Shown here in pieces: positions 777 to 13,716 of a stretch of DNA of 64,000 nt (position 1 is the stretch's first letter; each line of letters begins with the position of its first letter). The translations under genes were made by a program, and so were the position numbers. A model generated the notes under the pieces. It ran no database searches. It saw only the letters and a list, made by a program, of their open reading frames with translations, and was not told the DNA's origin. Location of the stretch: contig NC_042997.1 in NCBI RefSeq assembly GCF_006345805.1, positions 114,576,001 through 114,640,000 of the forward strand, written 5' to 3'. The stretch is from Octopus sinensis. Taxonomy: Eukaryota.

Positions 777-821
777 CTGGTTTAGGTTTCCATTCTGGTT
801 GACTTCCTGGAGTCAAGATCC
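777..821 (-). CDS. Gene M exon, 45 nt (GILTPGSQPEWKPKP)
   Basis: Acceptor ttgttttcactctag, donor G|gtatga. The next exon lies outside the window. Confidence 0.8.
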
Positions 822-3800
822 CTAGAGTGAAAACAATAAAATCTTGTAAATATATATGGAATGGTAGTATTCCAATAACACAAAGACATATATTCAAGAA
901 CATATCAAATAGAATGTCATCCAATTAGCAAAGATTTACTAATGAACATGCAATTGTCACTTGTTTATAAATCTGCATACCAAATTTGCATATATATATA
1001 TATATATTGATAGAAATGGTTAAACAACAAAAGAATGAAAGAGACCTCGATATTATGTAAATAGAGGAATTTATCTGTAAATGTAATATGTGACAATTAT
1101 TCGGTAGCCATGATAAAACTCTGAGTTTCGGATGCCAAGGTGGAAATCCACGCCGCCATCTCTTCAGTTATCCGGCCATTGGAAAAATACTATGAAAAAT
1201 GACCATCATACGAAAGGAAATTACTGTGTGATTGTCCGTTATTAAGACAAAAGAGCTATTTGAATGACTGCTAAGTGAGGGGAGGGAGTAAAAGTAAGGG
1301 GGTAAAAAAGTTCATAGTATTCACATGAGCGCGCATGTTCATACCTACACATGTATGCCACATGAGGGTGGATGAGTGTATATCTTTTGGTGCATGCATG
1401 TGAGTGTGAGGGCGTGCCTGTATAGGTATGAACATGCGTGCTCACGTGAATACTATGAACCTTTTTACCCCCTTACTTTTCTCCCTCCCCTTACTTAGCG
1501 GTCATTCAAATAGCTCTTTTGTCTTAATAACAGTCAATCACACAGTAATTTCCCTTTGTATAACGGTCATTTTTCATAGAATTTTTTCCGATGGCCAGAT
1601 AACTGAAGAGATGGCGGTGTGGATTTCCCCCTCACCATCCGAAACTCGGAGATTTATCATGGCTACCAAATAACTGTCACATATTACATTTACAGATATA
1701 TATATATATATATATATATATATATGTTTGTATATGTATATGTTTGTATATATATGTATATGTATATGTATATATATATCATCATCATCATCATCATTTA
1801 ACGTCCGCTTTCCATGCTAGCATGGGTTGGATGGTTCAACTGGGGTCTGGGAAGCCCGAAGGCTGCACCAGGCCAGTCAGATCTGGCAGTGTTTCTACAG
1901 CTGGATGCCCTTCCTAAAGCCAACCACTCCATGAGTGTAGTCCACTCCGTGAGTGTAGTATATAAATAGCCATCATCATCATCAGCATCATCAATTAACA
2001 GCCATGATCCATGTTGGTATGGATTAGACAGCTTGACAGGAGCTGATGTGTCCAAGGACTGCATTGTGTTCCAGAGTCTGCTTTGGCATGGTTTCTTCAG
2101 CTCGATGCAACCACTTTACAGTGTGGAATGGCTGCATTTTTTGTAATACCATCACTAATGAAGCCACCATATGCCTTGCAATATATATATATATATATGG
2201 GGAAAAAAGTCAAGGTAGAAAATGCTAAAATAATTTTATAAAAAACATTTCAGAACCGATTTCAGTCATTGAGAATTCTTCAACTGTAAGCATTGAAAAC
2301 AATTAAATTTTGGAAAACTTAAATGAAAAGTTTTTTAAAAGAATATTTGCATAGTATTCAAATACAAAGGGCATTTTCCTTGTTTCTGCCTGTCCCTGTC
2401 TCTCTTGTTTACTCAGACAGGCAGAAACAAGGAAAATGCCCCTTGTATTTGAATACTATGCAAATATTCTTTTAAAAAACTATTAATTTTTTCCAAAATT
2501 TAATTGTTTTCGATGCTTACAGTTGAAGAAGTCTCAATGACTGAAATCGGTTCTGAAATGTTTTTTATAAAATTATTTTAGCGTTTTTTCTAACTTGACT
2601 TTTTTTTCCATATATATGTCAACTTGTGTGTTTCTTTTCAACCTTCTACACACACACACACACACATATATATATATATATATATATATATATATATATA
2701 TATATGGATAGATAGATAGATAGATAGATAGATAGATAGATAGATAGATAGATAGATAGATAGATAAGAATTAAGAAGAGGATTCTGATAGAATCAGGTA
2801 CTTGAAAGGTATGCACCAGGTAGGCTTGAGTTATGTCTGTGGTTTCAGCCAATAGTTGGAGTTGAGATATTGGGTAGGATATTTCGGTTTTGTACACAGA
2901 GGAAACCAACTCCCTGAGTATTTAGCACCGAAGGGTCTTGTCTATGTTACATGTTATTTTGGGTATTTGGTTAGTATGTTATTGGTATACTCTAGAGTGT
3001 CCAAACAAGTTGTAAAATCCCTTGGTGTAATATAATTAAATGAATAAAAAATACATGGTGGATAAATTTCAGCTTGTTACAACTGTAACGAGCTGACACT
3101 TATCCATCATGTTTTTTATTCATTTGATTATATATACAAATATATACATACACACACACACACATACATATATACATATTATAATGATGATATACACATC
3201 ATGTGCACAGATACACACAGATATGTTATAAACACCATTGGGTGCTAGTATAGTAAGCAGTCTACCATGTCAAACAGTATAGTCAGGGTTATCTACCTTA
3301 AACGTTCAGTTTGTAAAGGAAACCAATTTTACCATTATACAGACATTAACAACAAATTAAACTGCAAGCTGAGCCTGAGTGAGATTTTAGAACTAATACC
3401 TTTTTCAACAGGAAAATCTAAAAATACAATAACTGACTGGTACACTGTGAAGTGTGTGGAGCCATAGTTTATCATGGGTGACAAGGGAATAGGGTTGAAA
3501 CAAATGCTAACCCCATTCAGATTGACAAAGCAAGATTTGCTGGTCCATGAAAATACAATTGAGGAAGAAAGCTGTATGGCAACAACACTCCTCTCTTCGA
3601 AGACAGTGATGCAGAACAACAAAACAACAGGAACAATGGACATAGAATTGATCAACCGTGGGTTTTTGGTCTCAAACAAAGCTCAGACTGTTGATACTTT
3701 TATGTGGAATGGCATGACAGGAACAGTTTGATCTTAATTATTGAAAGAGACTGTGAAAAGGTTCACTAATTCATTCAGATGAGTGGCCTGCTTATAATAA

Positions 3801-13687: not shown

Positions 13688-13716
13688 GATGCCTGGTGTT
13701 TGTTAACAAGAGGAAT
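13648..13716 (-). CDS. Gene M start exon (ATG at 13687; MSKPCFALVALLA)
   Basis: Acceptor ttctgtttttctctag, 29 nt of 5'UTR, 40 coding nt, donor G|gtaagt. The acceptor implies a further upstream non-coding exon. Confidence 0.8.

Follow-up and report, generated by a model that had tools for sequence, protein, structure and literature searches.

A micro-exon gene of alternating cassette exons in Octopus, predicted to encode a secreted Trp/Lys/Pro-rich protein

Background

Three systems known from other animals are among the closest described counterparts of the gene analyzed here. Modified Trp replaces 3,4-dihydroxyphenylalanine (DOPA) in Pvfp-1, a byssal coating protein of the mussel Perna viridis (PMC4275877, PMC9418609). 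Tropoelastin is encoded by cassette exons that are all of phase 1:1 and carry alternating modules, and the protein assembles by phase separation (10.1101/2024.12.03.626628). The micro-exon genes (MEGs) of schistosomes combine a signal peptide, very short symmetric exons and long introns with fast-evolving, lineage-restricted secreted products (10.1101/2023.06.21.545858, PMC4350168). We studied a stretch of 64,000 nucleotides (nt) from Octopus sinensis (contig NC_042997.1, positions 114,576,001 to 114,640,000), hereafter the window, which is AT-rich eukaryotic DNA with many microsatellites and transposon remnants. A first-pass annotation, made from the sequence alone, had proposed that this window contains a gene composed of micro-exons, which we call gene M.

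Gene structure in the window

Gene M lies on the minus strand between positions 777 and 13716, and its exons are given below in window coordinates. Its seven short exons contribute 40, 63, 45, 48, 51, 39 and 45 coding nt. Every exon has an AG acceptor after a pyrimidine tract, and the donors read GTAAG, GTGAG, GTATG or GTAAA; each of the window's 13 splice signals is strong. All junctions are in phase 1, the six internal exons (39-63 nt) are all of phase 1:1, and the introns are 1.4-3.3 kb long. The spliced 331 nt amount to 110 codons, which encode MSKPCFALVALLAVIALSEVQG followed by 88 residues. This agrees with the first-pass annotation, whose seven exons spliced in phase 1 are borne out with AG and GT borders throughout. 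Its count of a 22-residue signal-like peptide plus 88 residues with 7 Trp, 12 Lys, 2 Arg, 18 Pro and 5 acidic residues was reproduced exactly.

The first exon, E1 (13648..13716), consists of a 29-nt 5′ leader and, from the ATG at 13687, 40 coding nt (MSKPCFALVALLA plus G), with the donor GTAAGT. The leader is preceded by a candidate acceptor (ctctag|ATTCC) at 13716, which would give a 69-nt exon. Position 13716 is possibly a true acceptor, or possibly a position inside a longer first exon. A TATA-like box, GTATAAGG, at 13820..13827 on the minus strand, 140 nt upstream of the ATG, is shared by the window and O. bimaculoides and lies in an upstream region that is otherwise well conserved. It could be the core promoter.

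The six internal exons alternate between two types, A and B. Exon A1 (11589..11651, 63 nt) encodes the remainder of the signal peptide (VIALSEVQG) and SQKYLGHPWYLN. It is followed by B1 (10091..10135, 45 nt; GILPRSSGPAWDVHQ), A2 (7781..7828, 48 nt; MNKPKRPLSQLWWKSK), B2 (6120..6170, 51 nt; GLFPPQGEPEVKPKPKP) and A3 (4097..4135, 39 nt; EYNPVLPPWWMKK). The final exon within the window is B3 (777..821, 45 nt; GILTPGSQPEWKPKP), which has the donor GTATGA. The next intron begins in 1..776 (minus strand), where we found a (CATA)n microsatellite and a fragment that by eye resembles a mariner-type transposase, and here the gene leaves the window. The A exons follow the pattern x-Y-x-P-x-x-P-P-W-W and then basic or polar residues, and the B exons the pattern G-[IL]-x-x-P-x-x-x-P-E-[WVL]-K-P-K-P. 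The codon split by the exon border is Gly (G|GN) at every A-to-B junction and Glu (G|AR) at most B-to-A junctions. The alternation and the motifs quoted initially are thus confirmed, all of them on the minus strand.

It had also been noted that a list of open reading frames (ORFs) did not recover the exons as such. Indeed, this bacterial-style list has only longer, spurious ORFs that contain E1, A1, A3 and B3. We scanned 777-13716 for micro-exons, defined by at least 14 pyrimidines of 20, a strong donor, a length of 39-69 nt and an open frame of phase 1:1. The scan returned 8 candidates on the strand of the gene and 1 on the opposite strand, compared with a mean of 0.9 and a maximum of 4 in 200 second-order Markov simulations. 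The candidates on the gene's strand are all of the internal exons in the scanned range, two alternative boundaries and one extra. Given this excess over the simulations, the exon chain is real rather than a product of chance.

An ortholog in Octopus bimaculoides

The sole database relative of the spliced product is XP_052830051.1 of Octopus bimaculoides (173 aa), with 84% identity over 100% of the query and 91% nucleotide identity in the exons. It is a computer model in RefSeq named “adhesive plaque matrix protein-like”, a name that reflects composition only. As an independent gene model, it supports the exons of gene M: the ATG, frame, exon order and exon lengths (40, 63, 45, 48, 51, 39 and 45 nt) are shared. 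The O. bimaculoides locus (L001, on chromosome CM046601.1) is collinear with the window, and nucleotide identity is 80-93%, introns included. After B1, the donor dinucleotide differs: O. bimaculoides has GC (A|GCAAGT, L001 14703-14704), and the window has GT (A|GTAAGT). Two observations that would have spoken against the gene, namely use of a different frame and frameshifts or stops in orthologous exons, were looked for in O. bimaculoides; the frame and start codon are identical, and the exons contain neither frameshifts nor stops.

The ortholog has 11 coding exons, in a single protein model. The four that lie beyond B3 are A4 (EYRPQLPPWWMRT), B4 (GIINSKVKSGWKPKP), A5 (EYKPTFPIPENWLR) and B5 (GRYYPKSEPEWRPRIGMYTKF, then stop). 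Across the seven exons of the window and the eleven of O. bimaculoides, micro-exon sizes are 39-65 nt, all of phase 1:1. Positions 1-776 of the window contain no A- or B-like exon. Considering this and the presence of A4 to B5 in O. bimaculoides, we conclude that the copy in the window is cut by the window's edge, and that the exons seen there are the 5′ two-thirds of gene M. The earlier suggestion to extend the model beyond coordinate 1 is supported by these four further exons.

The gene was originally described as hidden. This holds for the window's species: word-indexed searches with the window protein and the full ortholog (candidates of 60-303 aa) found no protein model of gene M in O. 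sinensis or O. vulgaris. The same searches found no transcript-derived protein for gene M in a database that does contain O. sinensis RefSeq proteins. The description does not hold for the genus, given the O. bimaculoides model.

Several features of the comparison between the two species point to constraint on the exons. There is no indel in the 331 exon nt, versus 9.0 gap openings per kb of aligned introns; three would be expected, and the probability of none is 0.05. The exons have no stop codon, an outcome with a chance of 0.19 after 30 random changes. Of 26 splice-dinucleotide positions, one has changed, from GT to GC, which leaves a donor that can still be used. Taken together, the absence of indels and stops and the retention of the splice sites have a joint probability of approximately 0.004. 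Moreover, paralogous modules have kept their frame, length class and WW and PEWKPKP cores, even though their introns have decayed at distances of more than about 100 nt from the exon. We are therefore highly confident that gene M is a real protein-coding gene.

Growth of the exon array

The initial proposal that the gene grew by duplication of an A+B exon pair is supported by sequence shared outside the exons. Both the upstream and the downstream intron sequences are shared among A2, A3 and A4, and likewise among B2 to B5. Since the flanks are AT-rich and have a background pairwise identity of about 0.56, only the clear signals between A3 and A4 and between B3 and B4 were used. In O. bimaculoides, units 3 and 4 are 87.6% identical over approximately 225 nt around the A exon and 84.6% identical over approximately 195 nt around the B exon, as confirmed by BLAST. 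These matches occur in the identical order, with unrelated repeats between them, which implies a single duplication of a block consisting of the A exon, the intron and the B exon. B3 of the window is 90% identical to B3 of O. bimaculoides versus 80% to its B4, so the duplication that separated units 3 and 4 predates the split of the species. On the evidence of these sequence comparisons, the array grew through tandem duplication of A+intron+B blocks.

The terminal exon of O. bimaculoides, B5, is itself a B exon that continues through its ancestral GTATG donor and ends at a stop (...RIGMYTKF*; L001 26512-26531). In fact, an in-frame stop follows the donor of every B exon within 2-5 codons. In the window, read-through after B1, B2 and B3 gives SK* (10090-10082), GMCL* (6119-6105) and GMNL* (776-762), respectively, on the minus strand. 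Judging from these sequences, skipping of the donor after a B exon would yield shorter, properly terminated proteins.

An extra copy of a B-type exon (GSYFPKSEPEWRPTP, L001 31253-31297), with an AG acceptor and a GT donor, lies 4.7 kb past the O. bimaculoides stop and outside the model. This copy may represent a relic, an alternative 3′ exon or a piece of an unannotated paralog.

Predicted product

The N-terminus, encoded by E1 and A1, reads MSK-PCFALVALLAVIAL-SEVQG|S. It has the features of a signal peptide, i.e., a basic N-terminus (Lys3), a 14-residue hydrophobic core with a hydropathy peak of 3.2, and small residues at -3 and -1 (V-Q-G at -3 to -1). The product is accordingly predicted to be secreted via a cleavable signal peptide.

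The mature chain (88-151 aa) is basic, both in the part encoded in the window and in the full ortholog. The isoelectric point is 10.1 in both, with a net charge of +9 in the window part and +17 in the ortholog. Pro makes up 20% of each, while Trp accounts for 8.0% and 7.3%, Lys for 13.6% and 11.9%, and Tyr for 3.4% and 6.6%, respectively. Gly is at 7-8%, Val is at 2-3%, and Cys is absent from both. The grand average of hydropathy is about -1.1 in the window part and about -1.0 in the ortholog. For the ortholog, AlphaFold2 returned a mean predicted local distance difference test score of 60 and a predicted template modeling score of 0.18, with a helix only at residues 3-27, which correspond to the signal. 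The mature chain is thus predicted to be disordered and to adopt no fold.

Searches for relatives

The first-pass annotation recognized no family, and our searches gave nothing real either. A Pfam scan of the window protein and the ortholog found no match at E ≤ 10, and a sequence search of the PDB gave chance matches only (E > 0.3). A HMMER search of 1.84 billion representative proteins found no genuine relative, but the query's own cluster (XP_052830051.1, or P0001) was absent from the results as well. The library may lack that cluster, which weakens the statement that there are no relatives as regards eukaryotic proteomes. The one hit of this search, P0002 (E = 2.4e-4), has YRxxxPxWWxxxG and PTWW repeats. 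We rejected this hit as an artifact, since its ORF covers a minisatellite with a 17-nt unit, (GGTTTCCTACAGGACAA)n, in a metagenome contig of the ENA (L002 3176-3853). A literature search found no published work on gene M or XP_052830051.1, and a review of the proteins of cephalopod biomaterials includes none that is similar.

Within the reach of the databases, gene M appears from these sequence searches to be an orphan, one-gene family restricted to Octopus. What was already known of it is the uncharacterized, automatically named O. bimaculoides model. It is best described as a variation on a known theme, in which symmetric cassette exons are assembled into secreted low-complexity proteins.

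Proposed function and alternatives

The first-pass annotation had suggested an antimicrobial, adhesive or structural role. We propose that, after secretion, the chain stays extended and acts as a multivalent “sticker-spacer” polycation, in which regularly spaced Trp/Tyr and Lys/Arg would be the stickers on stiff, Pro-rich spacers, a composition that is classic for such chains. The stickers would make cation-pi, pi-pi and electrostatic contacts with anionic partners, such that the chain could bind anionic polymers or surfaces and also associate with itself. The product would then be a component of an extracellular material, e.g., an adhesive, a coating or the matrix of mucus or cuticle, which may form by coacervation. 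Splicing might also tune the number of stickers, since the symmetry of the exons would let each A or B cassette drop out with the frame intact. The neighboring gene, described below, likewise encodes a long, Pro-rich low-complexity region, which we counted in favor of an extracellular material. By analogy with two precedents, the mussel coating proteins (including Pvfp-1) and tropoelastin, an adhesive, coating or matrix component is the likeliest functional class, although we assign it only tentatively, at somewhat below an even chance. As an explanation of the data as a whole, a real, Octopus-only gene for a secreted sticker-spacer matrix polycation comes close to an even chance without reaching it.

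A number of observations weigh against this proposal. In the comparison with O. bimaculoides, 30 of the 331 exon nt differ (9.1%), which is no lower than the divergence of the aligned introns (520 of 7089 nt, 7.3%). Differences per exon, at equal lengths, are 0/40 in E1, 3/63 in A1, 5/45 in B1, 9/48 in A2, 5/51 in B2, 7/39 in A3 and 1/45 in B3. Nei-Gojobori counting gives a nonsynonymous rate (dN) of 0.082 and a synonymous rate (dS) of 0.154, and their ratio of approximately 0.53 is not significantly below 1 (Fisher p = 0.16). In addition, one of the seven Trp residues is substituted in the ortholog. From this ratio and the replacement of a Trp, constraint on the exact sequence appears to be weak. 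The functional class itself is suggested by composition and analogy. The protein has no WxxW C-mannosylation motif, its Tyr content is only about 3-7%, and it has no significant similarity to the repeat of mussel fp-1. Finally, the copy in the window is incomplete at the C-terminal end. The sequence of gene M evolves fast, and selection seems to act on the composition and the module pattern rather than on the exact sequence.

This rapid divergence raises the alternative that the locus is non-functional, i.e., a transcribed and fast-drifting sequence or an over-interpreted gene model whose frame is open by chance over a short divergence. Exons that diverge as fast as introns, a dN close to the intron divergence and a dN/dS ratio not significantly below 1 would all be expected in this case, as would the lack of a database protein model in the window's species and of relatives beyond Octopus. 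We nonetheless find this explanation improbable, in view of the joint chance of approximately 0.004 given above. Furthermore, eleven exons are open in O. bimaculoides, the signal exon is perfectly conserved, the 13 splice signals in the window are strong, and old paralogous modules whose introns can no longer be aligned keep their frame, length class and WW and PEWKPKP cores. Fast turnover is also common among immune effectors, and the main rival to a matrix component is a host-defense polypeptide that, whole or as fragments, would act like extended, Trp-rich antimicrobial peptides by binding and disturbing the membranes or nucleic acids of microbes. The high net charge (+9 in the window, +17 in the ortholog), 8% Trp, 20% Pro, and lack of Cys and of a fold fit such a role, and the PPWW and LWW cores recall indolicidin, an extended peptide with a PWWP core (PMC4588174). 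However, a mature chain of 88-151 aa far exceeds such peptides in length and lacks regular dibasic processing sites (it has a single KK, and Pro follows most Lys residues), acidic residues are interspersed, and no antimicrobial-peptide family was matched by Pfam or HMMER. Host defense is thus unlikely in our estimation.

Two further explanations concern the modules. In a cross-linked elastic or cuticular matrix protein of the elastin type, Lys in the KP-rich tails of the B modules would be cross-linked and the A modules would associate hydrophobically. The design of the gene is like that of tropoelastin, with phase 1:1 borders, two alternating modules at one per exon, and richness in Lys and Pro. 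Yet the sequence is not homologous to elastin, and the protein, at about 18 kDa, is very short and low in Gly and Val. Lys-Pro bonds are, moreover, poor contexts for lysyl oxidase, and we give this explanation only a slight chance. The combination of a signal peptide with short, recurring modules whose ends, K-K, K-S-K or R-T, are followed by Gly could instead indicate a precursor of small bioactive peptides, of the neuropeptide or gland type, cleaved at the basic residues that end the A modules. In this case, the basic residues precede Gly, which is the opposite of the Gly-basic order needed for amidation, and we rejected a neuropeptide precursor on this ground. Module ends also lack KR or RR pairs, and a receptor ligand would not be expected to differ between species as much as these modules do, which makes any such precursor highly improbable.

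A more specific form of the proposed matrix component can be imagined. In this form, gene M would be a micro-exon cassette gene, evolved within Octopus, in which splicing or early termination would mix A and B exons and the stops that follow donors into graded Trp/Lys “sticker” proteins. These would serve as a Trp-based, cation-pi adhesive or coacervate unrelated to mussel DOPA, in a structure specific to cephalopods, e.g., the lining of suckers, skin mucus or egg cement. We consider this version speculative and quite unlikely.

Gene M has implications beyond its function. Even where a cephalopod genome is well annotated, genes built wholly of exons of approximately 45 nt can be overlooked. 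Gene M also offers a clean, datable case of protein growth by duplication of an exon pair, and a case of a terminal exon made via read-through of an old splice donor. If the product is truly an extracellular Trp/Lys adhesive or coacervate, it would achieve wet adhesion or coating with a new kind of sequence and be of interest for biomaterials. If it is a defense polypeptide, the Trp-rich effectors would gain a class from cephalopods.

Neighboring gene and other features of the window

A gene on the plus strand from 20490 is arranged head-to-head with gene M. It corresponds to O. sinensis LOC115218319 (P0003, isoform X12), whose unique exons match at 99-100%. By these matches, the window belongs to O. 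sinensis or to O. vulgaris, a nearly identical sibling species. Its exons are at 20490-20546, 23077-24356, 29305-29400, 33011-33091, 36494-36814, 53073-53204, 58828-59016 and 62207-62395 (plus strand). The 1.28-kb exon of proline repeats starts in phase 1, and isoform X12 omits part of it. This gene has a Pfam match to Extensin_1 with 76 bits, and the match is compositional because it is below the curated cut-off of 105 bits. We looked for a signal-peptide exon for this Pro-rich gene, and found none that is convincing.

A long ORF at 48482-50272 and 50265-50738, on the minus strand, contains an RVT_1 domain (E = 3e-33), which indicates a copy of a retrotransposon of the long interspersed nuclear element type. 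The region 41000-47500 is very AT-rich (GC content 10-25%), with microsatellites of the TA and TATACA types. Short ORFs at 71-304 (plus strand), 6316-6570 (plus strand) and 63115-63468 (minus strand) resemble, by eye, the C- or N-terminal parts of mariner-type transposases (...NPLDYYVWG...). The likeness is an impression only, as Pfam returned no match for these ORFs at E ≤ 0.001. The ORFs at 71-304 and 6316-6570 are within introns of gene M, and that at 63115-63468 is outside the gene.

Comparison with known systems

The repeat of mussel fp-1 is a decapeptide with the consensus AKPSYPPTYK. Like fp-1 and Pvfp-1, which are secreted, basic, repetitive, unfolded and rich in Pro, Lys and aromatic residues, the product of gene M is basic and repetitive and has this composition, and it is predicted to be secreted and disordered. 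However, the repeat of gene M is a two-part unit of 28-33 aa in 4-5 copies, whereas the decapeptide of fp-1 occurs in tens of copies. Gene M further differs in having one module per micro-exon, low Tyr, no WxxW and a size of about 18 kDa versus about 100 kDa. In fp-1, Tyr is very abundant and is the substrate for DOPA, and proteins of this kind come from an adhesive gland and are hydroxylated after translation (to DOPA and Hyp, or to hydroxy-Trp in Pvfp-1). A BLASTP comparison of XP_052830051.1 with 12 copies of the consensus yielded 17 bits (E = 0.078), with 28% identity and 16% gaps. We rejected membership in the fp-1 family on the repeat, the Tyr content, the size and the alignment.

As in gene M, basic residues surround a PWW core in indolicidin-type peptides, which are also extended and unfolded (PMC4588174), as the product of gene M is predicted to be. 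By contrast, they are processed, amidated peptides of 13 residues that are released from cathelicidin precursors, while the product of gene M is long and has no processing sites.

Tropoelastin resembles gene M in its phase 1:1 borders, in two alternating module types with one per small exon, in Lys-Pro-rich modules, in disorder and in a design compatible with cassette splicing. It is non-homologous, with no homology detected via Pfam, PDB or HMMER, and it is vertebrate-only and much larger, with hydrophobic domains of Gly, Val and Pro and cross-linking domains of the KA and KP types. Gene M has the architecture of schistosome MEGs, namely short symmetric exons that hold most of the coding sequence, long introns and a signal peptide, and, like them, it evolves fast and appears restricted to its lineage. 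In MEGs, alternative use of the micro-exons diversifies the protein. It is not homologous to them, as neither the HMMER search of 1.84 billion representatives nor Pfam related it to a MEG family. Compared with the MEGs, the exons of gene M, at 39-63 nt, form a regular A/B repeat, and they occur in a free-living animal with no host interface. The resemblance of gene M to schistosome MEGs and to tropoelastin is therefore one of architecture only.

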